A DNA stretch of 64,000 bases from Anthoceros angustus (taxonomy: Eukaryota; Plantae; Anthocerotophyta), in assembly GCA_010909165.1 (NCBI GenBank), contig VJWM01000025.1, positions 1,426,001-1,490,000 on the forward strand. Reading direction: 5' to 3'. Shown one piece after another: positions 11-45,200 of the stretch. How positions within the stretch are numbered: the first letter of the stretch is position 1; each line of letters begins with the position of its first letter. The position numbers and the translations under genes are program-made. Below the pieces are notes generated by a model. The model was given only the letters and a program-made list of their open reading frames with translations. It made no database searches and was not told where the DNA came from.

Positions 11-1055
11 TCTTGGGGAGCTCTCTCCATCAGTACACAAGGTCCGCCACTTATTTTAAAGGCCAACAAGGAGTATGCAACCGTGGTAGATGGGCACGTC
101 ATCTTGGGGCGAAAAAGGGATCTGGCTAGAGCCGAAGTAGAGTATGAAGGTTAGTATTTCTGAACCATCTGAATGCGTTTGAATGTCCTGGTTTTCGAGA
201 AGTAGTTGCTAGTAGGATGGCTGCCAAATTTGTAGTATACATCGTTCCTTGCATGCTCTAAGGTTGCACTTGTTGTAGGATCGAAATCAAAAAGCGTCTT
301 GGAACTCCTACAGCTATCTCGCAAGTGCAGGCAGTAGGGTGAGTCAACATGAGTGTTATCCTAATAAAGGTGGAAAGAAAATGGAGAGGTTTGGCAGTGA
401 TTGTGAGCATAGAAGAGGATGACTGCCAAATTTGTAGTATACATTGTTCCTTGCATGCTCTGAGGTTGCACTTGTTGTAGGATCGAAATCAAAAACAGCT
501 TCTGTCGGGAACTCCTACAGCTATCCCCGCAAGTGCAGGCAGTGCAGCGTTTTGCAGTGTTATCCTAATGACAGTGTGGCAGCAGGCAAATGGAGAGGTT
601 TGGCAGTGATTGTGAGCATAGAAGAGGACAGACCTGGTGGAGCTGTCGACCGAGGGCAACTTGAACCTCTTCTCAAGAATTTGAAGTTCCATACTGATAT
701 AGTGGTGAACCAATCTGAGAACGTCAAAGCTTATCTTAGGAGACTTGCCAAGCTCCCTATCCTGGCTAACGACGATTGCTTTCTGTGTTGCATTAATGCT
801 CATGGGGGGATCGATGAAAATGGACGAGATTACATCCTCATAAGTGGAGCAGGTGGGGAGAAGCTATATGTTGATAATGATATCTTGAAGCCCATCTCTG
901 AATCCAGGTATCTTGCAAACAAGCATAAGGTCTTTGTGATCAATGCTTGTCGAGGAAGTGGCAGCCTTATAACAATCAAGAAAGCCGAGGACTCTGAAGT
1001 TGAGAAGAGCCAAGTGGTGAGCAAGAGAGCCGGAGAAGTCCGAGCCCTGTCATGA
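11..1055 (+). CDS. Caspase-like cysteine protease (peptidase C14A-like), 5' part including the large (p20) subunit; gene begins upstream of the window
   Basis: Exon 11-149 is open (SWGALSISTQG...EVEYE). A GT-AG intron 150-480 joins it in frame to exon 481-1055. Caspase motifs in order: RGLAVIV, DRPGGAVD (Arg 630-632), CFLCCINAHG (His 801-803), KHKVFVINACRG (Cys 948-950), then a linker. The ORF stops 7 nt inside the insertion that starts at 1048. Confidence 0.88.
216..629 (+). repeat. Tandem ~200-bp duplication of the caspase intron 3' end plus exon start (copy 1 ~216-420 degenerate, copy 2 ~417-629 intact)
   Basis: Both copies share ggatg(g/a)ctgccaaatttgtagtatacat...ttgttgtag|gatcgaaatcaaaaa...gagcatagaagagga. 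Copy 1 has indels and an in-frame TAG. Confidence 0.9.
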
Positions 1056-1964
1056 TGGGGTCACGCTGTATCGGGATCAGCGATTGTAGCAAGTCCATGT
1101 ACGTAGAGAGAGGATATCGGTAATATCCTAACATATAGAAATGTCATGTATTGTTAGCCATGGGTTTCCAGGTAGGTCGTGACGCAGAATTACCAATCGA
1201 TTTGCTGGATCATAACAAGGAGATTCGCGCGGGAGCTGGTGAGGGTGACTAGACCGGGAAAACACAATCATGGAAAACGATGGAAGGCGATGCATGGCAG
1301 GAGGGAGCAGCGACAGGAGAGCGACAGGCGACTAGGCGCGGGATACAAGAGGCAAGCGTGCTTGGCTTAGGATAGTCTTGAGAGTCTCTTTGAGCCAGAG
1401 GGAGTGACGAGCTCCTGGCCGCTGTAACCGTTAGTGAATGCCGAAAGCTTGCTTGGGAATTTCGAGTGGATGTCCGAGTCTGACATTTGGTTTTGGGTTG
1501 CGGCACTATGCCTGGCTCCTGTTGCGAACTCTCAAACTCACCACGTTCGATCGGCTGATAGACGCTGATTGAATGAGGCATTTTGGATGGGAATTTAGCA
1601 GGATTGTTGCTTTCTTTTTCTAATCAGCTCTCAACCATATGGGCATACGGGTCGTAGTTGAGCTGTTGATCATGACATGGACGCGTTGCGATTGCTATGA
1701 CCAGGGTTGTGCTGGTGTGTGTTGGACATGTCGCGTTGCTGCAAATGCCTGCAGCCGGTTAGTGGTGTCAGCACATGCACAAGCTGTGAGAACAGGAGAT
1801 GTTGTGCTATTCCGATGTCCAGCTGTTTTTGCACGACACCTAAGGTCTTTGTGATCAATGCTTGTCGAGGAAGTGGCAGCCTTATCACAATCAAGAAAGC
1901 CGAGGACTCTGAAGTTGAGAAGAGCCAAGTGGTGAGCAAGAGAGCCGGAGAAGTCCGAGCCCTG
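926..1964 (+). repeat. 124-bp direct duplication (926-1049 and 1841-1964) of the caspase catalytic-Cys/linker region flanking an insertion
   Basis: taaggtctttgtgatcaatgcttgtcgagg...ccgagccctg occurs twice with one synonymous mismatch (ATA/ATC). Confidence 0.97.
1048..1677. mobile_element. Probable solo LTR (630 bp) inserted in the caspase gene
   Basis: Bounded by TG...CA with an 8-bp terminal inverted repeat (TGTCATGA...TCATGACA) and followed directly by TGG (PBS-like position). No coding capacity. The flanks (agccc / tggac) do not form a matching TSD. Confidence 0.65.
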
Positions 1965-2246
1965 CATTCTGTGCGCGATTGTCTCATTGTTTACTCCACC
2001 AGTCATGGACAACGATCCTTCAGAGATACCGAGAAAGGCACAAACTTTATCACAGCTTTTATGGACGCCATCATCGACGGCTCTAAAATGGCAGACGTGT
2101 TGAGCATCTTAACAAGCGTGATGCGCAAGGTCACGGATATGGAGGTCAAACTCGCAAGCGGATCAGGACAGGGCATCGAAAAGAAATTCCAGTGTCCCGA
2201 GTTGTACTCCACCCTCACAAGAGGACTGTACTGGTCTTCACCATAG
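1841..2246 (+). CDS. Caspase-like protease, 3' part (duplicated NACRG plus small p10 subunit)
   Basis: DCLIVYSTSHGQRSFRDTEKGTNFITAF matches the caspase p10 pattern DFL..YST..G..SWR....GSWFI..L (Arg 2022-2024). It is followed by ILTSVMRKV and KKFQCPELYSTLTRGLYW*. The ORF is open from 1707. Confidence 0.88.
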
Positions 2247-3067: not shown

Positions 3068-3790
3068 TTGTGGGGCGACCAGTGGATCCATGACCTGACC
3101 TCAGTGTCAGGCTTGAGTATGCTGATTGCTCTGTATGGAAGATTGGAGCAAAAAGGCCTGATTTTAGTTCTCAATGTTACTCTTGCTTGCTTCTCAGGGC
3201 CTGTTGGATTCCTGGTACCTTGCCAAAACTCATGGGGATGTAGGAAGCGTAACACGGTGCTTTGACTGTCTCGTTTTCGTCCTAGCGGAATGGTTTGACA
3301 GTCTTGTGAGCCAGGTTCAGCAGCAGGCGTCTCCATGCATCCTCGTGGCAAATGTGGATGCCGCTACAGCCAGGTGCACAGGAGTAGCAGGCAGGCTCAG
3401 AGAGTCAGCTGGAGCTAACAAGAAACTTGCTGTACAGTCTGGCATTGATGTAAAGGATTTGTCGTGGGTTCTCGAGAGAGAGAAGAGGGATGAAATTTCG
3501 CGCAAGGTAGAGAGTAGCATTGTATCTACGTCTGAATTAGGAAGGGAGCTACGTACACACATACCACACACCACAAACTTGGTGTTGAAGCCGCCGTGTG
3601 ACAAAGGAAACAGAGGAAGAAATGCATGCTGTGAGAAGCTAGCTCTGGCTTCTGAAACCTTGAATCAATAAAAGTAGCAACATCTCTGGAGGCAAGACTA
3701 TGTACGCTTGTGTGATACCTGCCAGCGAGACCTACATAGTCCGCTCATTCTGCAGACATGGGCAATTGCAAGCCTCTGCTACTTTCTCGT
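3068..3790 (+). pseudogene. Degenerate PPR E2-DYW:KP fragment
   Basis: FDSLVSQVQQQASPCILVANVDAATARCTGVAGRLRESAGANKK...RDEISRKVESS...HIPHTTNLVLKPPCDK...CCEKLALA aligns by eye with the intact protein at 36969-41029 ([31 protein letters not shown]...LRRSAGAWKKP...RDDISSKLRSS...HVPHTELVLKPVSEK...GHAEKLALA). The Zn-ligand His is lost and the frame is broken after 3671. Confidence 0.8.
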
Positions 3791-4723
3791 AGTATATAGG
3801 ATGCTGAATATATCGAGATTAGAGTCATGTCCTTGAGGTTATGCCAAGCCCCAAGGGCTATCCTACACATGTAGGGCTTATGTGCACCATATAATTGTCC
3901 TGTCTAGCTGATATGAGTGAGTGACTAGCTTTACTATTTACCTCAAGCCAGTGGTGCTGTTGTAGACGACATCCATTGCCTCTGCTTCGTGTGTCTGCTA
4001 ACTGTGTTGATCATGTGGCGTAGCTGTGACTGTGATGTTTGTGAGTCCTAACAGCATGGCATTACATTGCATCCATGGAGATAACATGGAGTAGAGTAGA
4101 GGAAAGGGAAATCTTTACAGAAGGAAAATGGAGCATTATTGGCCTCCCCCTTCTCTCTCTCACCTCACCAAGGCAGCCGCAGCCGAGTGTCCGGTTGTGT
4201 GTTTGTACTTTCCCGGCTGCTGAATTATTGGAAGAGGCGTGTTCCGAGGAGTTGGTTTGATGCACGAGGCGGTGTTTGCAGGCAACTCAGGGCCCCACCT
4301 GCTTCGCTCGGAGCTGCCCAGCTGCCTGCGCAGGAGGTGCAGGGATGGCAGCGCCCGCTCCGGGTATCCTGCGCCATGCTGGGTGCTGTCAGGAATGTGG
4401 CTGCCTGTGCTGCTGCCTGTGCTGCTTGTCCCATGGAGCCCATGTCCATCCACCAGCTCTGCCCCCGGTTCCTTCCATGCTCTCCTGCTCTACTAATCTC
4501 TCGTCCATACTCTCCTCCCTCGCATCCCGTTGCTGCCCGGCCCGCCACGTGTCCTCGAAAGTGAAAAACAAATGCGATTTGCTTCCCCACTACGCTAAGG
4601 AACGCTTTTCGTCCCATGTCTCGCAGAAGGCGGGGTGAGGGCGACTCAGCAGCACAGGCAGCACAGGCAGCAGGAAAGCACAAGCAGCATAACTGGGTAG
4701 GAGCACAACCCTCGGCAAGCTTG

Positions 4724-5611
4724 ATGGGGGCCAGTGCTTCATTGCCTGAAGTGGTGTGGAAGACATTCGGAGCCCTGTTGGTGCTGCCCATCCAACACAA
4801 GCTGAGAGTGTTCAGTGTACTGGTGAAGGAACGCGACTCCTTCACGCTGATCGGAGATCTGGGCAGCCTGTGCACCGAAGGGGAGTCGAAGGTGTTTCTG
4901 CAGGACGTCATTGCCCACCAGGAAAAACGCTACATCACGTCCAAGGAGCTGGGATCGATTGACCGTCTGGTGGAGAACGATTCTCGATGGTCCAGCCGGC
5001 TTCTGGCGTTTCAAAATGGTTTTGCTGCGGGGCTCCAAAATGTGGATGCGTGGAGAATCACCGTTCCCGAACACCAGTGGGTATTTGCTGAGGAGGGTAC
5101 TAGTTTGAGGGATCTGTTGAACAAATTTGTCCCTGACGACGGGGATCTCCATTTCAAGAGGGGCAGGACTCTGGATCTGTGGATTGTGACTGAGGTGATC
5201 ACAGCCCCTTCCCTGACCATGTATGCTTTGAATGGGAAAGGAGCTGACATCGGCTTCTCCGTGACCCCTCCTGCTCCCCTGCCGGTACCGGTGGACGTGC
5301 AAATCACCCTCGGAGGAGAGGGCAGGGCAAAGCAGTTCATCTCCATCGCTGGGCCAGAACTGGATGACACAATTCAGCCCTTTCCCTTCGCCTTCAGGGG
5401 GTGGAAATGCACATACAAGAGTGGCTTCTTGAAGAAGTGGAAACCAGCCCGCCTCCAAGCGGACTCGTTTGATGTTCCACCTCTGAATGGAACACCTGAG
5501 AGACCAATCCGCAATGCAAGATGTGCTACCCCTCTGGCGGATCCCGATATGGCGGATTTTGTCGGGGAGGATGACTGGGTCACCACCATCCGGGATCCGG
5601 CAAAGCATTGA
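4724..5611 (+). CDS. Gasdermin-like pore-forming protein (bacterial/fungal type), 295 aa from the MGASAS start; ORF open from 4616
   Basis: Single-exon ORF. Segments FGALLVLP...LRVFSVLV...LIGDL, LWIVTEVITAPSLTM, PFAFRGWKCTYKSGFL and the tail DFVGEDDWV follow, in order and spacing, my recollection of Bradyrhizobium gasdermin (GINLILPP...PGDLII...RLGGW; FFVVTKVWRARGIRI; IFGLTLREVTYKDGAI; AFIGDDAFV). Not confirmed by HMM or structure search. Confidence 0.78.
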   Translation: MGASASLPEVVWKTFGALLVLPIQHKLRVFSVLVKERDSFTLIGDLGSLCTEGESKVFLQDVIAHQEKRYITSKELGSIDRLVENDSRWSSRLLAFQNGFAAGLQNVDAWRITVPEHQWVFAEEGTSLRDLLNKFVPDDGDLHFKRGRTLDLWIVTEVITAPSLTMYALNGKGADIGFSVTPPAPLPVPVDVQITLGGEGRAKQFISIAGPELDDTIQPFPFAFRGWKCTYKSGFLKKWKPARLQADSFDVPPLNGTPERPIRNARCATPLADPDMADFVGEDDWVTTIRDPAKH

Positions 5612-7643
5612 TGGCGGTCTTCGTGTGAGGCATTGCATTACAGTTAGAAGTGTGACAAACGTGTTGGTTAGGCAATGGCACTCCCTTTCTGGATGTTGCC
5701 ATCCCTACCTAGTGCACAAATTCTGTTTCAATCAGTGCAGCTTGAGCTGGATGCTGCTTGTGCCAGCCCTTGTCGTTTGATTCAGAGGTGGGAAGATCTG
5801 ATAGCTTCCTGGCTATAGCTTTGTTGTCTTCAAGTATGAGACGTTCCATCCTTCGTGTCTGGTGCTGTGCTCTGACACATACTGGAGATTCATGCATTCA
5901 TCAAAACACGGTGAAATCATTGGGCTGCGGTGTTTTAATGTATCTCACCAATTTCTACCACAGTAATCAGTCGATTAGTCTCATCTTCCTTGTGCACAAT
6001 GTCTGAGGCTGGTGGTAATCACTTCATCTGTGCGTCTGCATACTGTACACACGTAGATGATCAATCACACAGGAATCGGATATGTCCGGACGCGTTCAAT
6101 CAAATACGATGTGTTTCGGTAATCAAATCAGACCTGTCCCCTGTCCGGCACCACACGCTACATACTGGATCTTGACCTTTGAAGTGAAGGCATTCCGGAG
6201 ACCCAGTCAGGCGCGTGAAGAGTGAAGGCGCGTGGGCGGTGGAAGCAGGCATCCCGGTCCGGCAACCGGAATATTTAGGCATGTGTCAAGTTTGTGCAGA
6301 TGAGCTCTTCCTCCCTCTCACCTTATTGCAAAGCTTGTGTCCAGATGGAAGGTTTAACGCGGTTCTTGGGTATGTTGTAGTTGCCATCACTATGCTGCAG
6401 ATGACCCTAATCCTGTGACGTGAGGAATTGGGTAGCTGGCCGAAGAAGCAGAAAGAGCAGGAGCAGCAGCACCCTATCTCTGAAGACTAGCTAAGACTTT
6501 CCGTTGCTTTCGCTTTTCTTGGTCTGGTTTGGAGATCTGTTACACCCTACTTCCGCATTATCTACTAGGCAGTTAGTTCCACGTTCTCCGACCGAGCTGC
6601 ACCTTGTTGCTCCTCAATGTCTTTACCCACCACAACCCATGGTTCTGCTGCTCCAGATATTCTTGTCCGTAGCCCATACCTGTAAGCCGCTTTGCCGGCA
6701 TGTGTGCCTACAAGATGATCATACGAGACTGAGATGCATGGGGCAGGTGTCATCCCAATGTGCTGTTCATCGAAAAGATTTCACGAAATGCCTGTTGCCG
6801 GCTTCTTCGTTTGCATGCTATTGGCAATCCAGCGGTGGCTGCGATCTGGCGAACTTCCGATTTCACAATGGGCCTATAGGGAACAAGACATGCTCAAAGG
6901 CAGTTCCCTTCTTCATTTTATGGTTGTCAACATTTAGCAGGTTTCCATGACACAACATCCCTCTCCAAACCCAAAATTCATGGGTAGCTATTATGGATTG
7001 TCCTGTCCTCACAGGACACGGCATGAGCTGAGCAGTTCTGAATAGGCCACTTACCACAGAAGCCAGAAAGTAGGACTGATCCTTAATCACCATCCACACC
7101 CCAAAGCAGACGCACCTTCGCTTGCTGATCGATACGCACACCTGCACAATGGCCAGTGGCAAGCTTCTCAGCTAAAATTTCCACATACACAAGTCAGTGG
7201 TAGCCTTTGTGGACAGCCAGCGTGCAGAAACAAGTGGGTGTCTCCGGGAAAGAATGAAATTGCTGCTCACGAACGAGACTCACCAGAATCAACCACCTTC
7301 AATGCCAATTTTCACCATAACGAACGTACTGCAATGGAGGTCAGGATTGGCTGCCAGCCCCAGGGCATAATCGTTTGTCAAAGGCCCAGACACATAACAC
7401 CGGTACTGCTGGTGGTAATCAGCATGAAATAGATGGATATCTGATGCACAAAACCCATCATCAATACAATAGGAGGCAAAGAGAATAGACGATCAACCCC
7501 TCAATCATGTGAGCCATCAACGCACCAAGTTAATCGTTGATCGCAGACTACTTTAGCATCCTTATCATCTTACTCAAATGAGCACATCGGGCTTCCTTGT
7601 TCATCAACGGATCCTAGTCCCACATGTATAATCCTTGTCACCC

Positions 7644-7660
7644 TATATATATATATATAT
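7644..7660. repeat. (TA)n microsatellite
   Basis: tatatatatatatatat. Confidence 0.9.
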
Positions 7661-10189
7661 GTATATGTTTGATTGAGGGAAAAAGGGGCAACGAAGGTGG
7701 ACTTCGGGGGTCAAGGTGAGAAGGAGCGACTAAGTTCCTTACCTAAAGTTACCTACTGCTCCTAGAACATCATATGCAGGCAGAACAAATGGCCTGCAAA
7801 CTACGGAGGAAGAGCAAGAAGCGTCACCTGCCGCCGCTGCCTTGTGAAGGATTGCCGTCGAGAGGTCCCTTTGAGAGTCAAAGCACAGCATGGTGACCAC
7901 AACTTGTGGAAACGCGGAAACCGTCCCTAGTTGGCATGTTGGAGTTTTGTGGAATATGTTTTATGCATAAATATTGTCAAATTGATCTCAATTTTGTTCT
8001 ACATTACGTTTTTTGGGAGGAGAATTTTGTTGAATTTTTTTCCCACAAAAACATACATAACATATATCATTATCATTATTACCTGAATTAACGGTGGGAC
8101 AAATGACAACCTGAGGGACTAAGTACCCCTTGTCCACCTGCGGAATGCGCCGTTGCGCGCGGGCGCGACCACATGTGTTGATTAGGTTTTGCAAAGCGAG
8201 TGTTTTGGGGGCGGACTCTTCATGTAACAGACGTTTAGACGTAAGCGCGTCGTGGAGGCCAGCATTTACAGTGTGTGCACAGACTCGTTTGCACTCGTGA
8301 CGTGGAAGCTGGAAGTGTGGCCGGCTTATATTCGTTTGTGGGTGGCCGCGGGGCGTAAGAGCTGGGTTTTGATCGATTGGAGGCTGCTTGATTTTGGAGG
8401 TTGTTTCTAACATGGTCTTTGTTTGCTAGGAGGGTGCTAGTGTGGTGGTGCTAGGAGGGTGCTAGTGTGGTGGTGGGGCATTTTGAGTGTTGTCGTGAAG
8501 CGTGAAAAGTTTGGGACTACCGGTGTCCCGAGTATGAGCTTGTCCCGGGGCAACTCCACCAATCTTAGCTGTGAGGACTATGGGACTGCCTTGTCCCATA
8601 GCCGGGAGCCCCAGCCTTGTGGACCGCCATGTCCCATGGTTGAGCCCCGGCAGCCCGCAGGGATCGCCATGTCCCATGGCCGATCTGGTTGTAGCTCCCT
8701 TGCCTCCTATTGCCAGCCCACTTATCGTCCCAAAGATTCGCGACCCAGAGCTCGAATGGGGCCAAAGTTTCCCCAGTATGAGTCCGCCACAAAGGGTCCC
8801 CTTGCAAAGAACAAAATATGCTGGGAGAGCATCGCTCCTACAAAGGGATCCAGCGCAATGGCGGATTCACGAGATTTCTTGAAGATTTCTTGGCCAGCCA
8901 GCCTACTACCGAGCCTGAATCGAGCCTTGGCGCCTTGTTGGGAAGCACGCGCTGAGCAAAAAACACACAGATCTGATCGATCTTGGACAAATATTCTTGG
9001 TAGCTCTTGTCAATTTAGTCTTTTGGTGGAGTCAGTCTACTTTTTGTGTATGAATAGCTGCAAAACTACCCTGGAAGGAAACCATCCCAATACGGATCCG
9101 ATCCAAGGGTACTCAACCCTAGAAGGACGAAGCGGGTTTCTCACCATTTTGAGCCAACTCACTATCGATAAACAATTATACTAAAATAATTAGGCTCAGC
9201 CCTTCGCTGCACAATTAGCAAAACCTTGCATTCATTCGTTCTACGTTTTCGAGAAAATAACCGGACACAAGCAAGCTTCCACCGACTTTTTCTGGCGTGA
9301 AGATATGAGGCTATTGCACCGAGGACGGAAAGACGGGAAGCAGCATCTTCGATCGGCTACAAAATCTTTATGCTGAGCTCATCAGATGCGGCTGAGCATC
9401 CTCATAAGATCAAGCTGAACACCCTCGTAAGATCCCACCCCAAACCGATATTCCTACCAAGCCCTGCGATTTTTTTGATCACAAAATGACCTCTACACAA
9501 CAACCAGTGGTCGAGCAGCTCGGGAATCTCTTCAAATCTCATCGTTCGATGAGCCCTTGTACGTAGACTAGTAGACAGGGCAGATTTTCCTGCGGTTAAA
9601 TCAAGCATGCCAAACTTCGCTCAAGGGACCCCCAATCGTGAGGCTTCGCAAAAACAAATCACGGCCCGGAAAAGAGCGAGAATCGAGTCAAAATTCATCC
9701 TTCCGGGGTTAAGGTGGTCGCAAGTTGACCACTAGTTGCAGCTTAACTTGCATCCTCACAGGCTAATAGGTATGTTCTCTGGCACTACGCAGTTGTCAAT
9801 GCTCTCCCTGCTTCCCTTAGTGCCAATTCCAGTAAGCCCGACTCTACCCTGCTCTCAGTTCCTTGCCTCTTCAACAAAATGGCTCGTCTGGTATATCGGT
9901 CACGGATGGCACATCACCAGTCTCACATCCGAACTACAGTCTGCACATGAAAGGGAAGTCTGTTGACAAAACCCGAAACGAGTTAGACAGCAGAGCTCTC
10001 GCAAACACAAAAACAGTGAAGACGTTTGACGACTCTCGAACAGAACCAGCACAGAACTGTGGCCGGAAAACTGAATAAATGATGCAAGCTGGTAATACAA
10101 CAGGCTGCTTGAGTGTTGCATTCCAGACAGACGCTGGGGACAAAATTTAAACGAGCTTGAAATAACAGCCCGCAGGCACCGAGGCAAGG

Positions 10190-12637: not shown

Positions 12638-15600
12638 CTACTTTGGTCTTCCTTTACTCTGGGGATGCTTCTCATCACCAACCATGAAACTATGCACGAG
12701 CCCATCCTTGTCTGTCCACGAGCTCCGACCTGGCTGCTTCCATGCGCTGATTCGCTCTCTCATAGCCTGCATCTTCCGAGCTTGCTCCCACATCTGAGCA
12801 CCCGTGAATATGTTTGACATCAACACGTACGCTGCAGCATCTCTTTCATCTAGCTTAACTGCTTCATTGAAAGCATGGAGTCCCACCTCCACATTGCCCC
12901 ACTTTCGACAAGCACCCAACAGAGTGTGCCAAACAGCACCATTAGGCTGCACAGGCATTGTCCTTACTAGAGCTAGTGCCTCATGCAGATGGCCTGCACG
13001 ACCCAAAAGATCTACCATGCATGTGTAGTGATCCTCTGTGGGAGTAATGCCATTATCTCTGTTCATAGCCTGAAAGGACTCCCACCCCTTGTTGACTAGT
13101 CCCGCATGACTGCACACCGTTAGTAGACTAAGATATGTGATACTGTCCAACGGTAAGCCATCAGCCATCATTCTCTGAACCAGGTCAAAGACCACTTCAC
13201 TGTCTCCTTGACAGGCGTAGCCTGCAATCAGTGCATTCCAAACCACAAAGTCTTTTTCATCCAACACATCAAACACCTGCTGTGCATCGACCATGCTCCC
13301 ACACTTTCCGTACATGTTAATCAAACTGCCTGCTACAAACTGATCACCTTGAAGACCTTGTTCTACAATCTGTGCATGTAGCAGCCTTCCCAGGTATAAA
13401 GCTGCCACATTGGCACATGCCTGCAGGAGGCACACAAATGTTACAGAATCGGGTGCAGCCATGCCTCCTTCCTGCATGGCACTAAAGAGGCGGAGGGCTT
13501 CGTGCTCCATCCTCTGCTGGCAATATCCTGCAATCATGGCATTCCAAGTCACCACATCTTTATGAGCAAGTCCATCAAACACCTTCTTTGCATCTTCCAA
13601 GCTGCCACACTTTGCATACATGGTCACCAAACTGTTGGCTACAAATACATCAGCTTGATGCCCTTGCTTTCTGATTTGGGCATGAAGCTGCTTCCCCTTC
13701 TCCAATGCCAGGGTGCCCACACTAGCACATGCCTGCAGGAGGCACACAAATGTCATGGTATCGGGTACAGCCACGCCTCCTTCTTGCATAGAACTATACA
13801 GACTGAGGGCTTCATGGCCCCTACCCTTCTGAGAATATCCTGCTACCATGGCAGTCCACGTAACCACATTCTTTTCATCAAGTCTGTCGAAAAGTCTCTG
13901 AGCTTCTTCCAAGCTGCCACATTTTGCATACATATTCACCAAACTGCTGGCGACGAACACATCAGCTTGGTGACCACGTTCTCTAATTTCACTGTGAAGT
14001 TGCTTCCCCTTCTCCAACGCTGAGGGACCGACAGATGCACATGCCTGCAAGAGGCAAACAAATGTTACAGAATTGGGTATTGCCATGCCACCTGCTTGCA
14101 TAGCACTGTAAAGGCGGAGGGCTTCCTGCCCCATGCCCCGCTGAGAATATCCTGCTATCATGGCAGTCCACGTCACCACGTCTTTCTGAACAAGTCCGTC
14201 AAACAGTCGCTGGGCGTCTTCTAGACTTCCACACTTTGCATACATGTTCACCAAACTGCTGGATAGAAACGCATCAGCTTGGTATCCTGCTTCCCTAATC
14301 TGTGTATGAAGCTGCTTCCCCTCCTCCAACGCCGGGGTGCCCACACTCGCACATGCCTGCAGGAGGCACAAAAAGGTCACAGAGTTGGGTACAGCTATGC
14401 CTTCGTCTTGCATAGCGCTGTAGAGGCGAAGGGCTTCCTGCCCCATACCCCGCTGAGAATATCCTGCTATCATGGCAGTCCACGTCACCACATTTTTTTC
14501 CTTAAGGCCATCAAACAGCCTCTGGGCGTCTTCCAAGCTGCCACACTTTGCATACATGTTCACTAAACTGTTGGCTACAAAAACATCAGACTGATGTCCT
14601 TGTTCTCTAACCAGGGCATGAAGGTGCTTCCCCTTCTCCAATGCTGGGATGCCGACACTTGCACATGCCTGCAAGAGGCACACGAATGTCACAGCATTGG
14701 GTACAGCCACACCTTCTTCTTCCATGGCACTGTAGAGCCGAAGGGCTTCCTGCCCCATGCCACGCTGAGAGTACCCTGCTATCATGGCAGTCCAGGTCAC
14801 CACATCTTTCCGACCAAGTCCATCAAACAGCCTCTTGGCATCCTCCAAGCTGCCACACTTGGCGTACATGTCCACCAAGCAACTGTACACAAACAGATCA
14901 GGCTCCACGCCAGTGGCCAACACAGCAGCATGAACCTCCTGCCCGGATTTCAGGTCTCCGCCCCTTGCACAAGCCTTCAGAACTGCCACAAACACATAAC
15001 CATCTGCCTTCACATTCGACCGGCACATCCGACGATACAACCCTATGGCCTCCCTCGCTCGCCCCTGCTTCACATGCGCAGAAATAACGGAACCCCACAT
15101 GAAGGCATCTGGCTGGTCAACCACTTCAAACACATCCATCGCGTCTTGCAACCTGCCATTAGAGGCATACAACCGCAAAACATAGTTGCACATGAACATC
15201 TCCGCCTGGTACCCCATCCTCACCATCAAAGCATGCATGCGGATACCCAAAACAAGATCGTTCTCCAATACACATTTCTTCAACACTTCGCAAAACAGTG
15301 CTTTGGAAATACAACCTTCCTTCTGCACCAAAACTCCCAGACCCTCAACAGCCTCAGCGAGGTGGCCATCACAACACAGCCTGTTCACCATCCCAGCTGT
15401 CACAATGCTGTCGTCACCTGCAGGCCTGCGTGGCATCTCCAAATCCAGAGCAGCAAGCTGCGCATCCACCCAGCCCAGCTGGTACAAACTGTTCAACCAG
15501 AGGACCTCCCGGCACTGCCTGTGCCGGAAGTCAGGCACCCAGAGGCTCACCCCATTTTGCCTGCCATCCAAACCAAGTGTAGGGTCCCGATACCCGGACC

Positions 15601-15898
15601 CCCGTCCAGCAAGAAATCCTCTTGGACGGGCTGGCGTTTTTGCAGAGCTGCTGCTGCTGCACCTCCCGACTTGGTTGTGCGCCCACAGATGGTTGCTCGG
15701 AGTCAGGCGACCGGGAGCTCTCCCTATACTCATCGCCAAACCATGACATTGTTGCGACCAGGAAGACGGTCCCCACGACAGGTCAGTGTTGCTGGACTGA
15801 ATTCCAACGCTCCAGACACCCATTTCTCGAAGCTGCACACCCTCAGCTTTCGCATCCGAGCGACCCGGGCATCCCAGATGGATCACTCCGTCAGTCAA
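12638..15898 (-). CDS. PLS-class PPR protein with E1/E2 and a DYW domain truncated after the PG box (organellar RNA-editing specificity factor)
   Basis: About 23 P/L/S motifs (VTWTAMIAGY; VTFVCLLQAC; SLVNMYAKCGSLED), E motifs, then KQPGRSSWTDKDGLVHSFMVGDEKHPQS and a stop. No HxE or CxxC. True start codon uncertain. Confidence 0.95.
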   Translation of the reverse strand: MTDGVIHLGCPGRSDAKAEGVQLREMGVWSVGIQSSNTDLSWGPSSWSQQCHGLAMSIGRAPGRLTPSNHLWAHNQVGRCSSSSSAKTPARPRGFLAGRGSGYRDPTLGLDGRQNGVSLWVPDFRHRQCREVLWLNSLYQLGWVDAQLAALDLEMPRRPAGDDSIVTAGMVNRLCCDGHLAEAVEGLGVLVQKEGCISKALFCEVLKKCVLENDLVLGIRMHALMVRMGYQAEMFMCNYVLRLYASNGRLQDAMDVFEVVDQPDAFMWGSVISAHVKQGRAREAIGLYRRMCRSNVKADGYVFVAVLKACARGGDLKSGQEVHAAVLATGVEPDLFVYSCLVDMYAKCGSLEDAKRLFDGLGRKDVVTWTAMIAGYSQRGMGQEALRLYSAMEEEGVAVPNAVTFVCLLQACASVGIPALEKGKHLHALVREQGHQSDVFVANSLVNMYAKCGSLEDAQRLFDGLKEKNVVTWTAMIAGYSQRGMGQEALRLYSAMQDEGIAVPNSVTFLCLLQACASVGTPALEEGKQLHTQIREAGYQADAFLSSSLVNMYAKCGSLEDAQRLFDGLVQKDVVTWTAMIAGYSQRGMGQEALRLYSAMQAGGMAIPNSVTFVCLLQACASVGPSALEKGKQLHSEIRERGHQADVFVASSLVNMYAKCGSLEEAQRLFDRLDEKNVVTWTAMVAGYSQKGRGHEALSLYSSMQEGGVAVPDTMTFVCLLQACASVGTLALEKGKQLHAQIRKQGHQADVFVANSLVTMYAKCGSLEDAKKVFDGLAHKDVVTWNAMIAGYCQQRMEHEALRLFSAMQEGGMAAPDSVTFVCLLQACANVAALYLGRLLHAQIVEQGLQGDQFVAGSLINMYGKCGSMVDAQQVFDVLDEKDFVVWNALIAGYACQGDSEVVFDLVQRMMADGLPLDSITYLSLLTVCSHAGLVNKGWESFQAMNRDNGITPTEDHYTCMVDLLGRAGHLHEALALVRTMPVQPNGAVWHTLLGACRKWGNVEVGLHAFNEAVKLDERDAAAYVLMSNIFTGAQMWEQARKMQAMRERISAWKQPGRSSWTDKDGLVHSFMVGDEKHPQSKGRPK
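13290..14950 (-). repeat. 312-bp-period intragenic tandem repeat (PLS triplets)
   Basis: The anchor aagctgccaca(c)ttt recurs at 13599, 13911, 14223 (variant), 14535 and 14847, exactly 312 nt apart. Confidence 0.92.
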
Positions 15899-16372
15899 GA
15901 AATAAACTCATACATCTCTTGACACATTGTCGAACTGTTTGTCAAAAATAAGTGGGAGAAGGTCGGGTGGTTATGACGAGGGAAATGCTCCATCTGAATG
16001 GTTGGGTACGACAGATTGCCACCAACCAAGACATCACCGTGGAGATTCCTATCAGTCAGGAACAGCGAGCACACGATTACTGCAAACAACAACGAAAACC
16101 TCAGACAACAAGCTTGCAGGCGGGAAAAATGTGAGACCTACTTTAGTGATGTGGGGAGGAATTTTGTTCGTTGCAAGGGAGTTAGAGGAAGCTTGGGAGA
16201 GAAACTTCGATGCAGCTCCTGGTATGCCGCCTAATCGAAATGAACCAAAATGCGCCTCTAACTTCAGTCCAGAAGCCTGATGCTCCTAGATGTCATCGAA
16301 GGGCCTTACAAGGTCGATCGAGGCAATTCTGTTTGTTATTGCCGTCTGCTTCTCGATCGCAGCGCAAGCATC

Positions 16373-17767
16373 ATGGCTGCACTCAGCTCTGCGTCTGCGG
16401 CCTGCCACCATCTGCATGCGGTCGCCGCATCATCCCGGCGAGAGCTTTCTGCAGTGGAGAATCGCGCCGGGCTGCGCTTGACAACCGTGCAATTTGCAAT
16501 GAAGCCTCTCAAGGTCCCGATCAGACGAGGTTCTGGAGGCCGGATGTTATACGCTAGCGCTAGCGCTAGCCCTAGTTCATCCTTTTCCTCCGAGTCTCCT
16601 TTCCCAGTGGAAGAAGATGAGATCAAGGAGGCTGTGACGGCTGAAGGCCGGCCTGTGAGCCGCTTGTCGCAGGCGGATTTTGTGAAGGAGGCGGTCCGGA
16701 GGCTGTCGCAAGAGGATCTGGAGGTGGCAGTGCGCAAGTACAATTTGGAGGACGAGCTGTTCGCGGAAGTGGATTATGCGCAGGTGAATGCCTTCACTGA
16801 TCGGGCCTTCAGTGGCAACCCGGCTGCGGTGTGCTATCTCCCCTACGCCGACGACTCACGGTGGCTTCAGCTAATTGCTCGAGAATTCAATCTGTCGGAA
16901 ACGGCCTTCGTGGTGAAGCGGCAAGGCTCGAGTCCGGAGGAAGGGCAAGCGGACGAGGATGAGGATGAGGATGAGGAGGAGCCCGTAGCTCCGGAAGAAG
17001 TCATCGACTTCGACCTCCGGTGGTTCACGCCCAGAGTGGAAGTGGATCTGTGCGGCCATGCCACCTTAGCTTCAGCTCACCTTCTGTTTGCTGCGGGCGT
17101 CGTGGAAGGCGACCTCATTCGCTTCCACACCAGATCAGGGATTCTACAAGCCAGAAAGGTGCAGGGATACGACGAATCGGTGGAACAAGGCAAGAAAAGA
17201 CCGTCCGGCAAGGGCGTGGTGGAGCTGGACTTCCCTATTTCAACAGCAACACAAATCGTTGGCGAACAGGTGCGGAAGCTTGCAACCGGGCTGGGGCTTG
17301 AACAGCAGCAGGTGGTTTGGGCTGGAGCCACTAGTCTTGGGGATTTCCTTCTGGAACTGGCGTCCTGGGAGCATGTGGAGGAAGTGAAGCCCATACTACA
17401 TCTGCTGGACGACTTGCCCGGCCGGGGCGGAGTCATCGTCACTTCCCGCGCCAAGCCTGGCAGCGGCTACCACATCGTCTCCCGCTTTTTTTGCCCTAAA
17501 GCTGGCGTCGCTGAAGATCCTGTCACAGGCAGCGCGCATTGCACGCTCGGCTGGTACTGGAGCTCCAAGCTAGGCATAAGCAGTCTGGAAGCCTACCAAG
17601 CGTCGGAGCGTGGCGGCTCCATATCCGTCCGGGTGGACGAGCAGGCCGGCAGAGTGTTTCTCCGAGGGGCTGCCGTCTTGGTCATGGCTGGCGTCATTCT
17701 CAACCCTGTCACCCCGGGGTCAGGGCCGTCTAAAACTGACGACAACTTTCCCTCGGTAGCTACTTAG
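16373..17767 (+). CDS. PhzC/PhzF-family (DAP-epimerase fold) protein with probable plastid transit peptide
   Basis: VNAFTDRAFSGNPAAVC, EFNLSETAF, LRWFTPRVEVDLCGHATLA, SRFFCPKAGVAEDPVTGSAHC, RGG. Ser/Ala/Arg-rich N-terminus. Single exon. Confidence 0.95.
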   Translation: MAALSSASAACHHLHAVAASSRRELSAVENRAGLRLTTVQFAMKPLKVPIRRGSGGRMLYASASASPSSSFSSESPFPVEEDEIKEAVTAEGRPVSRLSQADFVKEAVRRLSQEDLEVAVRKYNLEDELFAEVDYAQVNAFTDRAFSGNPAAVCYLPYADDSRWLQLIAREFNLSETAFVVKRQGSSPEEGQADEDEDEDEEEPVAPEEVIDFDLRWFTPRVEVDLCGHATLASAHLLFAAGVVEGDLIRFHTRSGILQARKVQGYDESVEQGKKRPSGKGVVELDFPISTATQIVGEQVRKLATGLGLEQQQVVWAGATSLGDFLLELASWEHVEEVKPILHLLDDLPGRGGVIVTSRAKPGSGYHIVSRFFCPKAGVAEDPVTGSAHCTLGWYWSSKLGISSLEAYQASERGGSISVRVDEQAGRVFLRGAAVLVMAGVILNPVTPGSGPSKTDDNFPSVAT

Positions 17768-21631: not shown

Positions 21632-24600
21632 CTATGGATACGATGTCAAAGTGATGTCTAACTTCAGAGGACCCGCCCCCTTCCTTACCTCAAATACCTG
21701 TTGCACATCCTCGCCTGCAACTGAGACCGAATATTGTCCTGTAAATCCCCGAAATGCTATCTGTCCCTCAGCATTCGTCACACCACTGGTCTTGGTCAGC
21801 CATTCCTGCTTCAAAGCTAGAAATCGTTTTCCTGCTTCTGTTAGACTGGAGTCCCAATTCACCAGATGAGCACGCTCTCTGGACATGGCACCTTCCCAAA
21901 AGCCCCAGAGAAGGACTCCTTCGACACCTGGATGTGCGTATGCCTCTCTGAGAACCACTTCCAAATCGTCAGCCCTGATGTGCTCGTTTGATGATGCAAC
22001 ATCGACTTCTGTCAACCAAATAGGAAGTCCAGCAGAGCTCAAGACATCGAAGGATTCACGCAAGATGGAGCCCACTGGAGCATCAATGTGGCCCTGGACG
22101 CCAACCCCTCCCACTGTTGCTCCTTGTCTCTGAAGCTTCACTATATGTTCCACATATCTCTGCGCGGAGGAGTTGGCGTCACAGCCATCCTCGACATGGT
22201 AATCATTGACAAACAAGGTTGCATGGGGGTCGAATTGCTTGCACAGCCGGAACATATGTGGAATGATTTCACGGCCAAGTCTGTCTTTGAAGAACGAGCC
22301 ATGTAGCATTTCGTTGTTCACATCATAATGCTTAAACCTTCCCTGATAGCGAGATAACATGTCCTTAATCCGTCTTTGCACAGCATCACGCAAAGCAGGC
22401 TCCGGAAGACACTTCAGCCATTCCTGCACTGTATGTTCCACCTCCCAGAAGATACAATGGCCCCTTACAGGAATGCTATGCTGGGAACAGAAGTCCAGCA
22501 GTTCATCAGCGTCTTTGTAGTTAAGCTTACCCTGGCTGGGTTCAATCCACGTCCATTTCATCTCATTTTCAAATACTGCCCAATTGAACTGCTCCAGAAA
22601 GAACTTCACATAACTAGGGTTGTCGATGTTGTGTCGATTTATACATGAGCCAAGAGGAAAATCGTTACTTGTTTGGAGAACCTGCAATGACCGCGAGGGC
22701 ACAACGCGCCCATATCTGTCTTTGACAGTTAATATGACCTCTCGCTTGCGCACCTGGGTAGGGAATCTCTCAAGGTGTTAGCCCAGAGCGTGAATGAACC
22801 ATTCACCAAATACAAGAGCTGAGATGAGCAATATGAAGCCATTTGCACACCCGAATGAAATAACGTACCGTGTCTGTGCATGCAATTAGTTTTGTCAATC
22901 TCTCCGTTTTGTCCACTGCAAGAATCCGTAAGCCAGCTAACATAACGCTAGTACCAGGAGCTGGACCTTGAACGTACACAACAACCTTCTTGGCTGCGTT
23001 CTCTAACCGAAATGAGCCTCTTACTTCAGTCCAGGACCCTGATGCATCCGCCTGCGTCTCTCCCCCATTTACCCATGCATCGTCCACACTAAGAGCTACA
23101 TTAACCTTCTGGGCTTCAGTTGCAAGACGAAGTCTCACCCAGGCCTTAACTTCGTAAGTGAGGAATAGCCGCACTCTGTCAGTGATGTTCTGTGCTGGAC
23201 CCTCCCAGTAGTGATGTCGTTGTGTGGCAACAACACATTGAGATCCACGTGGTCCTTCACTGGTCACTTCCAGATGACATGACCCAAGAGCATACCAGGA
23301 GGCCAGTCCCTTGGAAAACGTGCTGTTTTCAACAATATTAATTCCATATCTTGGATCCTGTAACAAACACGTCCAAAGTTGCCCTCACCACTCTACTGAC
23401 CACAAAGTGCCCAACACCAACGATCAAGATACGAGATAAAAATGATCATCCCCAGAGCAACGAACATGACATCCAACCTCAAGGACAGGACGATTGGCAG
23501 GAGTTGGTTTCTTTAGGGGACGCATGGAAAAGCTCCGCACACTCATATCAACCCCACTGGGAGGTCCTTCCAAATAGGCTACCGCTTTGCTAGGTAGCTT
23601 GTGGAGAGTCAGCCTTCCCTTCAGCTCAACCCAACCATTTGTTGATGCTTCAGTTCTGCATGTACAGAATATGACACAAGGAGGTAGATGATTGAAAACT
23701 GGAAGAAATGGAGTGTCTAAAAGATGGATTTGAAATGCTCTACCTCCCCATGGAAATATATTGCTCTGCTCCATCCTGATTCACAATATGTAGTGTAGCA
23801 AGCACAGTTGCAGTGTTGACTGATCCATACAGCCTCACGACTGCATTGACATCATACACCACATTTGCTTTGAGGCGCCTAGTGATGTCTTGCTGAATGC
23901 CTTGCCATTCAGCACGGCGACATGATAGGACAACACAGTTGTTTATCCTGGAGAAGGAAGGCTTGCATCCATTGCAGGTCCAGCTTTCCAGTCCATCCTG
24001 AAAATTCCAGTTTTCTAGTATCTCTCCAGTACATACGCTCGGGTCTCCGTCCATATCCTCTTGCTTTTCCGTTGATCTGCTTCTACCCATCGCCGCTTGC
24101 TTCTGCAAAAAGCATCAGATCCATTCCATCAAGCGCCTCATCCCAAGAGTAGCCTTTACCACAGGGTGATGGTGTCATACCACAGCCACAGGCTCTCCAC
24201 TTGCTGGTGTGATGGATAGTCTTGCAAGAAGAAGACACACACCACGAGGCGGACCTTCAACATACACCAATGCCTTTGGCCAGGATGACTCCACCCGGAG
24301 CTTGCCCTTCAGTACCGTCCATTTCCCTGCCGAGACACTCCCCCTGCACAGCCCCACGACTCGTTCAAGCCTGGAAAACTGCAGAGAACTAAGCAAATTG
24401 ATGCACAAATCAGCTTCGGGAAGCACAATACTTTGCCAGCTGGATATACTGCGGTGCCCCGCCGGCAGCAGTGTCGAGCTTCAGGGTCACAAGCACTGGT
24501 ACATCTCCATCCTGTCCCACAGCACTCACCACAGCTTGCAAATCATACTCAACAGACGGCCTCAACCTGTCTTGTATCTCCTGTGAGATGCCCTGCCACG

Positions 24601-36968: not shown

Positions 36969-39900
36969 TTACTGATGACCGTCACATGAACACCAGCCAT
37001 CGACAAAGTGATGGACACGGTGTGCATCTCTAACTATGATCTCGCGCTTCTCAACGCGCGACATGATTTTTGTCCCACTGTGACAGTCATTGCACATGCG
37101 AAGGTTCTTAGTGACTAGCAAGGTCGTGCCATCCGGAGTGTTGAGCAGACCATAAGCCAATGCTAGTTTTTCAGCATGACCACATAACGCATCTTCCTTC
37201 TCTTTCTCAGAGACTGGCTTCAGCACTAATTCTGTATGTGGCACATGGCCCCCTTCTTCCTTCAATTGCAAATTTGAGCTCCTCAGCTTAGAGGAGATGT
37301 CATCCCTTTCCTCCCCCACAATAAAATCCTGGACCTTCCTATCCACCTCAATCCACGCCCTGGCAGGCTTCTTCCAAGCACCTGCAGACCTCCTTAAGCT
37401 TTCAATCCTCTCTACATCGGTCCACCTTCCAGCGTTGGCATACAAATTCGCCAGTAGAACGTAGGCACCAGCATTTTGGGGTTCAAGTCCGGTGAGATGG
37501 TCGAAACATCGCTGGGCACGGTCTATGTCGTTGTGGCTTGCACAGGCAGTGAGCAAGGATGTCCACCCGACAACATCCTTCTCAAAAGGCATACTTAGCA
37601 GGATATTCTCTGCCTCATCCATGCGACCTGCCCGTCCAAGAACGTCGACCATAGATGTATAGTGCAAGACCCCAGGAGCAATGCCATGGTCTTCCACCAT
37701 GCTTTTGAAATACTGTTGAGCCTGTGGTACCAGTGCCTGGTGACTGCATGCCACGAGAAGACATAGGAAAGTAGCATCATTGGGCTCGACCCCTTCCTGT
37801 CGCATCTCCTGAAAACACTGCATTGCCATTTGACTGTCATTGTGTTGGCTGTAGCCATAGAGGAGAGAATTCCATGTCACCACATCTCGCGCGGGCAGCC
37901 TGTCAAACACTCTGCGGGCATCGTCCAAGTTGCCGCATTTGGCGTACATGTCTACCAGGCTGCTTCCAACAGCCACCTCAGTTTCAAGTCTCTGTTTCTC
38001 AATTTCGGAATGAAGTTCCTTACCGTGACCTAAAGCTCCAATGCTGGCACACGCTTTTAAGAGGCACACAAAAGTGACTTGATCAGGAGTAATGCCCTCC
38101 TGTTGCATTAGTTCATAAAGATTAAGCGCCTCTTGGCCAAGTCCATGCTGAGCATATCCTGTAATCATGGCATTCCATGTCACCACATCTTTCGTGGGCA
38201 ACCTGTCAAACACTCGTTGAGCATCCACTAGACTGCTGCACTTAGCATACATGTCCACCAAGCCATTGCCAACCAATAAATTTGCTTCTAGTCCTCTATC
38301 CTGTATCTGTGAATGAAGGTTCTTGCCCTCATGTAGAGCTCCTATACTCGCACACGCTTTGAGGAGGCATGCAAATGTAACATGACTGGCTAGGGCCACA
38401 CCCTCCTGATGCATATTTGCATACAGAGAAAGCGCTTCTTCACTGAGCCCGTGTTGGCAGTATCCTGTAATCATAGCATTCCATGTCACCACATCCCGTT
38501 TTGGCAACCTGTCAAACACATATCGAGCATCCGCCAAGCTTCTACACTTTGCATACATGTCCACCAAGCTGGTACCTAAAACTACATTTTGTTCAAGACC
38601 CTCCTTTCGAATTTGTGCATGGAGCTCCTTGCCCTGACGCAAACATCCAATGCTGGAACATGCTTTCAAAAGACACACCAGTGTAGATTGAGTTGCCTCC
38701 ATTAGGCCGTGCTCTTGCATACACGCATACAGAGTCAGGGCTTCCTGATCAAGGCCGCACTGGACGTAGCCTGCAATCATGGCCCCCCACATCTGTACAT
38801 CTTTGTTTCCTAGCTTATCAAACACACTGCGAGCATCTTCAATGCTGCCACAGTTTGCATACATATCCATCAGACCACTGCTAATAATAGGATCAGCCTC
38901 AAGACCTCTTTCCTTAATCTGAAGATGGAGTTCCTTGCCCTCATTTAACAATCCAGTGCTGGCACATGCTTTCAAAACGCATGCATACGTGATATGATTT
39001 ACTGCAACAGTGGCATCATTTTGCAGACTTTTAAACAAAGACAGGGCCTCTACTCCGCACCCATACTGAGAGTATCCACTGATCAGAGCATTCCATGTCG
39101 CCACGTGCTTTGTAGGCAACTTGTCAAACACCATGTGAGCATCCTCCATGCTTCCACATTTTGCATACATGTCGATCAGGCTATTCCCCAAAATTTCATC
39201 TGTCTCAAGCCCATTATCCTGAATTTCACAGTGAAGCTTCTTGCCCTCACCTAAAGCTCGGATACTGGCACATGCATTGAGGAGGCAAGCATATGTCACC
39301 TGATTGGCTGGAAGCATTGCCTCCTGCTGCATTGAAGTATAGAGAGAGAGAGCCTCCTGACCGAGCCCCTGCTGGGCATAGCCAGCAATCATGGTAGTCC
39401 AAGTTACCACATCATTTGAGGGCAACCTGTCGAATATGCCACGAGCAGCCTCCAGACGACCGCATTTTGAATACATGTCGACAAGGCTACGGCCTATAAC
39501 TACATCACCATCGAGGCCTCTTTCCTGGATTTCCAAATGGAGCTGCTCGCCTTGGTGTAAGGCTCCACTAGTGCCACACGCTTTCAGGAGGGACACAAAT
39601 GTATAGTCATTTGGCGTGGTGACACCTTCCTCTTTCATACTTGAATAAAGAGTCAGTGCTTCTTGAGCAGGACCACAGCAGGCATATCCCCCAATCATTG
39701 CAGTCCACGTTACAACATCTTTAGATGGCAAGTTGTCAAACACATGGCGGGCATCTTTAATACTGCCACATTTCACATACATGTCTACCAGACTGCTTCC
39801 AATTACAACTTCAGCTTCAAGTCCATGTTTCACTATTTGAGAGTGAAGCTCCTTGCCTTCACGCAAAGCTCCGGTGCTGGCACATGCTTTTAGGAGGGAT

Positions 39901-44595: not shown

Positions 44596-45200
44596 CTTGC
44601 CGGCCTGTTGCAGCTCCCGCTCCCGCTCCTGCTCTTGCTCTTGCTGTTGCACACAATGCCGGGAAGGAGAGGGCCTGGTGCGAGCGGGCTCAGCCGAGCT
44701 CCATGGCAGGCGGCGACGGCAGCATGGCCGGCTCACGCCGAGAAGATGCGGCTGCCATCACCTCAGGCCCTGGGGAGCTTGGGGCAGCTGGGCCTGGGGC
44801 TGGAGGCTGGAGGCTGGCACACCAACCAGGGCTTCCAGAAGCAGGAGAGCCGGGACGTGGGATTGGCGTCCAGGGAGTGCGTCCGGAAGGGCGAGGACGC
44901 AGCGAGAGGGCAAGGCAGAAACAGGACATGCCAGAAATCAAGTAATTTCACTGCTCGCCGTAGTTTCATACGGCCTTCCAGCTTCCAGCTTGGACGACGT
45001 CCCGATCGCCGATCGCCGATCGCACAGGCTACCCGAGACGTCTCCTTCGTCATCATATGTAACTTTGTCAGCACTTGTGCGCTCCTATAGCAAAGCTCCG
45101 ATGTTGTGACGCCAAGGCTATAATAATACCGAGCCGCTTCAAAAAGATCACATATTCACCGTGCTCCGCGATACCAACATACAAACGGGGTCACCATCTA

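Follow-up and report, generated by a model that had tools for sequence, protein, structure and literature searches.

Does a land plant carry a gasdermin in its nuclear genome, and if so, how would such a protein be held closed and released? Cell death in plants is commonly attributed to nucleotide-binding leucine-rich repeat (NLR) resistosomes, MLKL-like proteins and metacaspases. The question is raised by a single-exon open reading frame (ORF) at positions 4724-5611 on the plus strand of a 64,000-nt stretch of Anthoceros angustus DNA (assembly GCA_010909165.1, contig VJWM01000025.1, 1,426,001-1,490,000 of the forward strand; this whole stretch is called the window, and all coordinates refer to it unless a contig is named). 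A preliminary description of the window had interpreted the encoded protein as a gasdermin of the bacterial or fungal type with a short autoinhibitory tail, possibly acquired from bacteria. In a 2025 review, gasdermin homologues are given for metazoa, fungi and bacteria only, and a full-text literature search pairing gasdermin with plant terms found no paper describing a plant gasdermin. Based on the analysis presented here, we are confident that the ORF encodes a gasdermin-fold homologue residing in a plant nuclear genome.

Structure comparisons place the encoded protein among the gasdermins

An exhaustive phmmer search with the 295-aa window protein against 1.84 billion representatives recovered only five true relatives, which are 28-31% identical to it in that search and 315-362 aa long; two are encoded on Joint Genome Institute (JGI) metagenome contigs and three in assemblies of public runs. 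Structure prediction with AlphaFold2 (AF2) from the single sequence gave an unusable model with a predicted local distance difference test (pLDDT) value of 32. The model used here was computed from the alignment of the six family members only, without templates, and reached a predicted template modelling (pTM) score of 0.66, with most of the core at pLDDT 70-90.

When this model was compared with the PDB using Foldseek, ranks 1-8 were all occupied by bacterial gasdermins (bGSDMs), with E-values from 1.1e-7 (7n51) to 1.1e-3 and a probability of 1.0 for the top entries 7n51, 7n50 and 7n52, and after these followed RCD-1, GSDMB, GSDMA3 and GSDMD. With VIA-align, run against 48,161 chains, ranks 1-13 were all gasdermins. 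Bradyrhizobium 7n50_A was aligned with a Z-score of 11.8 over 214 residues (model 3-292 versus chain 7-259), Vitiosangium 8sl0 with Z 11.8, Runella 7n52 with Z 10.9, the Trichoplax gasdermin with Z 10.3, fungal RCD-1 with Z 8.0 and animal gasdermins with Z 8-9; the CDC/MACPF (cytolysin/perforin) folds came next at a Z of about 6. A shape search of the ESM Atlas returned a Bact_GSDM cluster in its top row (TM 0.54/0.59). The gasdermin assignment of the preliminary description therefore stands as far as structure is concerned, with gasdermins, bacterial ones first, and not another fold as best matches.

At the level of sequence profiles the assignment held in part. The PADLOC bGSDM profile, a non-curated model and the sole sequence model that reached significance for the window protein, matched it with an E-value of 1.2e-5 (residues 146-240 versus profile positions 142-227 of 257). 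The same profile matched the relatives P0002 (E 9.8e-10) and P0003 (E 6e-5), and these matches are collinear and jointly span profile positions 3-227. The NCBIfam model prok_gasdermin (NF051890) matched three of the six family members with a best E-value of 2.7e-6. In searches against PDB sequences, phmmer with the window protein and with P0002 found no gasdermin match, and a profile of the family ranked two bacterial gasdermin chains first at an E-value of about 0.3. Language-model features gave clusters carrying Bact_GSDM and Gasdermin domains as neighbours, the top clusters being Ascomycota proteins of 276-347 aa without a Pfam family.

Three points speak against the gasdermin assignment: the Pfam gasdermin models (PF04598 and PF26164) did not match the window protein at E-values up to 1, NF051890 gave for it an E-value of 0.041 and 13.6 bits, below the curated cutoff of 100, and both the structural model and the motif conservation are derived from six sequences only. 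Taken together, the interpretation is supported as regards both the fold and a distant homology to prokaryotic gasdermins.

The reading frame is intact and likely starts at position 4724

The longest ORF at this place comprises positions 4616-5611 (331 aa, plus strand). Read from the ATG at 4724, it encodes 295 aa and ends with a stop codon at 5609-5611, and the ORF listing thereby confirmed the intact, intron-free frame of 295 codons that had been described. The sequence motifs quoted in support of the earlier interpretation could all be identified in the translation, namely LWIVTEVIT (residues 152-160), ADIGFSV...VDVQITLGG, GALLVLP, FSVLV and LIG, the segment FAFRGWKCTYKSGFL named as the last core strand (residues 223-237) and the tail DFVGEDDWV (residues 278-286); the linker called Pro-rich contains six prolines within residues 248-275.

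The coding sequence (CDS) is considered to lack introns because the relatives align with it end to end (query 9-289 versus P0001 16-300). The ORF is regarded as more than a chance frame since its five homologues were found with E-values from 1e-9 to 3e-6 in the phmmer search and since the GC content at third codon positions (GC3, 0.63) is higher than the overall GC content (0.55), as in the neighbouring genes. An ORF of 299 aa on the opposite strand (4739-5638, minus) gave no family match and is taken for the mirror frame that a GC3-rich gene commonly produces. No second gasdermin copy was found within the window by tblastn.

The ATG at 4724 is the likely start codon, rather than that at 4616, because all five relatives start with Met-Gly at the aligned position, and because in a run with the same species label (X1) the 44 nt at 4613-4658 are replaced by 69 nt, so that the upstream extension would no longer be in frame; from 4658 to 6032, X1 is identical to the window. 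In the same run, the upstream intergenic DNA at 3124-4404 differs at about 3.5% of positions and by indels; no difference was found in the gene and the 420 nt that follow it. The pattern may be due to mosaic haplotypes, a paralogous repeat or the assembly.

A small family with a conserved N-terminus, an invariant Asp and a conserved tail

The alignment of the six sequences contains 15 invariant columns, including M1, G2, D247 and F279. The family could not be extended further. No fungal protein was found at an E-value of 0.001 or better in the exhaustive phmmer search, word-index homologue searches with the protein, the full alignment and a core-only alignment yielded no new relative, and scanning metagenomes with patterns from the window protein and from an alignment of P0003 to P0005 gave no confirmed relative. 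A scan of 185,579 prokaryotic species genomes found no relative either; the method detects close relatives only, so this result counters recent transfer alone. P0004 and P0007 differ in only two codons, which makes dN/dS, the ratio of nonsynonymous to synonymous rates, uninformative.

Six contigs, each from a different run, that encode P0004 or P0007 (L010-L012 and L014-L016) share their first nucleotide, 19 nt before the ATG, and differ at their 3' ends. The shared start could represent a transcript 5' end, and with it a sign of expression, or an assembly break. On contig L001, downstream of the relative P0002, fragments of CofH_C and Radical_SAM domains were observed at 3845-4099 and 8540-9001 on the minus strand; these could belong, as exons, to an FO-synthase-like gene, hinting at an alga or a bryophyte as source of the contig.

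In five of the six members the N-terminus fits G-{EDRKHPFYW}-x-x-[STAGCN]-{P}, the PROSITE-type pattern for N-myristoylation, here at Gly2, and this suggests that the gasdermin-like protein may be lipidated at this residue. D247 is located six residues past the last core strand of the model (235-241), in a loop with low pLDDT (243-284). Its context is kept in all six members, with Gln or Arg at P3, followed by Ala or Phe, the Asp itself and then Ser, Gly or Ala at P1', and points to a putative cleavage site directly after D247. The linker that follows is of variable length in the relatives and acidic in most of them. In the tail, around the invariant F279, a pattern M/L-x-x-F-x-acidic-x-x-W/F recurs across the family.

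AF2 modelled the tail as a helix (274-280) and a strand (286-290) at low confidence, and the structural alignment with 7n50 extends to residue 292. The conservation of the motif and the docked strand of low confidence suggest that the tail might be autoinhibitory. A complex prediction of the core (1-247) with the tail (248-295), run without the family alignment, scored 0.00 and bears on binding in neither direction. The size of the protein and its short conserved tail fit the bacterial or fungal type of architecture, as had been proposed.

A caspase-type gene is located upstream, and linkage recurs in relatives

A Peptidase_C14 domain was identified 2.5-4.3 kb upstream of the gasdermin gene on the same strand (Table 1). 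It is present in two pieces, both of which match animal caspases best, and the linked protease resembles these more than it resembles metacaspases. The pieces keep the His and Cys motifs NAHG and NACRG, and their alignments keep DRPGG and SFR at positions aligned with the two arginines of the S1 pocket. In animal caspases these arginines bind the P1 Asp, and the kept positions are consistent with the invariant Asp of the gasdermin family.

The C14 domain is split by a direct duplication of 147 nt (903-1049 and 1818-1964, 92% identical) and its ORFs are fragmented. Since the duplication repeats the Cys motif in both pieces, this copy is regarded as broken, and activation of the gasdermin-like protein would therefore need a paralogue elsewhere in the genome. 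Further direct duplications, which are nested in this gene and likewise repeat parts of its protease domain, comprise 80 nt (at 214 and 416) and 41 nt (at 379 and 588).

These rearrangements bring up the alternative that the locus is a stranded relic, in which a true gasdermin homologue still has an open frame but is silent or functionless and is becoming a pseudogene after decay of its partner protease. The three duplications and the split ORFs of the C14 gene are in line with such decay, and neither of the two runs X1 and X2 gave RNA evidence. However, the frame is open throughout its 295 codons, the residues invariant in the family (M1, G2, D247 and F279) are retained, the composition carries a coding signature, and the CDS is identical in the contigs of a second run, though its downstream flank is identical as well. 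A relic is therefore considered unlikely, although of the alternatives weighed here it is the one to be taken most seriously.

A comparable neighbourhood was found for P0005 (26% identical to the window protein), which is encoded on the 30.7-kb metagenome contig L002. A homologous C14 gene lies 6-7 kb upstream of it, and P0005 follows this gene and two NB-ARC-LRR (LRR, leucine-rich repeat) genes on the same strand. The standalone C14 protein of L002 (2895-3722) shares 33% identity with one C14 piece of the window and 26% with the other. Next to the relative P0001 (contig L008), in tail-to-tail orientation, is an LRR-ARM fragment of the same NLR family; its identity to the C-terminal part of the NB-ARC-LRR protein of L002 amounts to 41-44%. 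A protease gene next to the gasdermin gene, as in bacterial and fungal gasdermin systems, is thus present on L002 and in the window, though broken in the latter. The linkage of gasdermin, protease and sensor across such divergent relatives argues for a functional module.

On L002, an ORF of 236 aa (4019-4729) containing A-H-G-L-G-G was observed upstream of the NB-ARC-LRR ORF at 5511-8105. The motif resembles the nucleophile elbow of alpha/beta-hydrolases with the Ser replaced, and the two ORFs may together form a hydrolase-NB-ARC-LRR gene, a type of gene reported from bryophytes. A shared adaptor domain joining NLR and caspase was also considered and was dropped, as the ORFs flanking C14 on L002 are not homologous to each other.

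Predicted mode of activation

We consider a short-architecture gasdermin that is held by its tail and released by Asp-directed, caspase-type cleavage to be the best overall explanation and favour it with moderate confidence. In the full mechanism, the gasdermin-like protein would be N-myristoylated at Gly2 and anchored at the membrane, and in the closed state its tail would brace the core through F279 and W285. An Asp-specific caspase-type protease, either fused to an LRR/NLR sensor or acting under its control, would then cut after D247 (L-Q-A-D, then S), and the freed core (residues 1-247) would oligomerise into membrane pores, leading to cell death. For this particular gene copy the complete sequence of steps seems probable, if by a slightly smaller degree.

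Four observations weigh against such a mechanism. Apart from the split C14 domain of the window with its fragmented ORFs, the C14 protein of L002 keeps the Cys and has a Tyr (S-A-Y) aligned at the catalytic His position of the N-A-H-G of the window; this could mean a caspase that is inactive or atypical, or an alignment shifted by a few residues. The tail and the linker were modelled at pLDDT values below 55. Finally, regarding transcription, the stretch is contained only in run X1 (30 Mb), which spans intergenic DNA too and may be DNA; X2 does not contain it.

Gasdermins are also activated in other ways: fungal HET-Q1 by the subtilisin HET-Q2, RCD-1 by allelic heteromers or partner recognition, and the Trichoplax gasdermin by a redox change. 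The window protein might accordingly be a functional gasdermin-fold protein that depends on another protease class, on partner recognition or on redox and not on Asp-directed cleavage, or it might have a non-lytic role at membranes. RCD-1 and the Trichoplax gasdermin (Z 8.0 and 10.3) are indeed among the structural matches, the top language-model clusters are the Ascomycota proteins mentioned above, the catalytic His may be absent from the C14 protein encoded near P0005, and the Runella bGSDM is cut after Leu and not Asp (Johnson et al., preprint). However, the Asp that is invariant in the family, with a small residue after it, stands in an otherwise variable loop, precisely where bGSDMs are cleaved. 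The conserved tail speaks for a release by cleavage, and two lineages show linkage to caspase-type domains that keep the positions aligned with the S1 arginines. Activation by other means is therefore judged improbable, and Asp-directed release of the tail is preferred.

The gene resides in plant nuclear DNA

Further along the same contig, two PLS-class pentatricopeptide repeat (PPR) genes were identified, typical of land-plant organelle RNA-editing factors, together with an SBP-box ORF, a plant-specific transcription-factor gene apparently with one large exon (Table 1). The presence of PPR genes with E and DYW features and of the SBP-box gene on one contig indicates that the window is land-plant nuclear DNA. 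The gasdermin ORF, with a GC content of 0.55, a GC3 of 0.63 and an observed/expected (o/e) ratio of CpG of 0.60, is similar in composition to the neighbouring genes and to the whole window (CpG o/e 0.62), which argues that it is neither a contamination nor a recent arrival.

A non-plant gene, brought in by assembly contamination or by transfer from bacteria or fungi in the very recent past, would be in keeping with the prokaryotic gasdermins as closest profile and structure matches and with the lack of introns. It is contradicted by the plant genes on the same contig, by the GC, GC3 and CpG depletion equal to those of neighbouring genes, by the finding of no relative among the 185,579 prokaryotic species genomes (pattern scan and tblastn), and by the sole homologues being located on eukaryote-like contigs with plant-type NB-ARC-LRR genes. 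We regard this explanation as very improbable. For the suggestion that the gene was possibly acquired from bacteria, the analysis gave no positive evidence: no close prokaryotic relative was found and the composition is fully plant-like. Structure and profiles are nearest to prokaryotic gasdermins, and the top language-model neighbours are fungal.

Two further ORFs in the window are intron-free, bacterial-looking enzyme genes in plant DNA: a single ORF of 495 aa with a complete PhzF-like domain (E 2e-68) at 16280-17767 on the plus strand, and an ORF of 373 aa with a GH10 xylanase domain (E 6e-48) at 21632-22753 on the minus strand.

Table 1. Coordinates of the gasdermin-like gene, its predicted elements and other genes of the window
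Feature	Position	Strand	Basis
Complete single-exon CDS, gasdermin-like protein, 295 aa + stop	4724..5611	+	ORF, homologues, fold matches, PADLOC bGSDM
In-frame upstream ORF extension, probably untranslated 5' region	4616..4723	+	No counterpart in relatives; frame broken in the X1 variant
N-terminal M-G-A-S-A-S, predicted N-myristoylation motif (Gly2, Ser6)	4724..4741	+	M1 and G2 invariant in 6/6
Pore-forming gasdermin core (predicted), residues 1-247	4724..5464	+	AF2 pLDDT, bGSDM structural alignments, PADLOC match
L-Q-A-D247 then S248, predicted caspase-type (P1 Asp) cleavage site	5453..5467	+	D247 invariant in 6/6
Flexible Pro-/Asp-containing linker, residues 248-275	5465..5548	+	pLDDT 31-43
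C-terminal tail motif M-A-D-F-V-G-E-D-D-W-V (276-286), candidate autoinhibitory peptide	5549..5581	+	Family conservation
Peptidase_C14 domain, large-subunit part, broken gene	444..1055	+	Pfam PF00656, E 1e-13; best PDB matches caspase-8, caspase-2
Second Peptidase_C14 piece, Cys-motif repeat and small-subunit part	1707..2246	+	PF00656, E 2.4e-18; best PDB matches caspase-6, -3, -1
PLS-class PPR gene, about 1086 aa, single ORF, E motif	12638-15898	-	Domain content
PLS-class PPR gene, about 1234 aa, single ORF, E motif and DYW deaminase domain	36969-40673	-	Domain content
SBP-box ORF, 1036 aa, SBP (SQUAMOSA-promoter-binding) domain at residues 238-312	41626-44736	-	Domain match

Implications for cell death in plants

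An intact plant gasdermin near caspase- and NLR-type genes would bring a third eukaryotic kingdom into the gasdermin family. It is possible, though somewhat short of probable, that some land plants of bryophyte grade have a complete pyroptosis-like pathway, in which an LRR/NLR sensor activates an animal-style, Asp-specific caspase domain that cuts a myristoylated short gasdermin at Q-A-D and thereby gives rise to lethal pores. If so, plants would have a route of immune execution separate from resistosome channels and metacaspases, and the pathway would either be ancient in eukaryotes or represent a module that was acquired once. Since the substrate is defined and both a cut site (D247) and a lipid anchor (G2) are predicted, the question of plant pyroptosis would become directly testable. 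The family of six sequences, for which there is no Pfam model, also offers a seed profile with which bryophyte, fern and algal genomes can be surveyed.

Comparison with known gasdermin systems

In bacterial gasdermins, a Phe-rich C-terminal peptide braces the sheet, the disordered loop before this peptide is cut by a neighbouring protease, and an N-terminal lipid, a palmitoyl buried on Cys3/4, stabilises the closed form; the adjacent proteases are of the C14 or CHAT type and in many cases are fusions with LRR or NACHT domains (Johnson et al., preprint). The plant protein shares with the bGSDMs of Bradyrhizobium (7n50), Vitiosangium (7n51/8sl0) and Runella (7n52) the fold, the size class and the division into a core and a short C-terminal peptide. 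Further shared features are a tail rich in aromatic residues, a predicted N-terminal lipidation site and a predicted cut site in the loop that immediately precedes the tail; the plant gene likewise neighbours a Peptidase_C14 gene, and sensors of the LRR or NACHT type are located nearby. In contrast to the bacterial systems, the plant gene is eukaryotic and nuclear, the sequences are only 11-17% identical, and neither a Pfam match nor a match above a curated cutoff exists. The plant protein has no Cys at positions 3-4 and instead has Gly2, a predicted site of co-translational N-myristoylation; its linker and tail are together longer (48 aa) and acidic, and the predicted P1 residue is Asp, compared to Leu in Runella.

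The fungal gasdermins HET-Q1 and RCD-1 are, like the plant protein, eukaryotic, short and single-domain, and their genes usually adjoin protease genes with NLR-like architectures. They differ in that they are cut by a subtilisin (HET-Q2) or act through allelic heteromers (RCD-1), whereas the protease linked to the plant gene is of the caspase type. With the animal gasdermins GSDMD, GSDME and GSDMA3, the plant protein has in common the fold of the pore-forming N-domain (Z 8-9) and a predicted caspase-type cleavage at Asp downstream of an NLR-type sensor; however, it is much shorter, does not match PF04598 and lacks the helical C-terminal repressor domain of about 200 residues.
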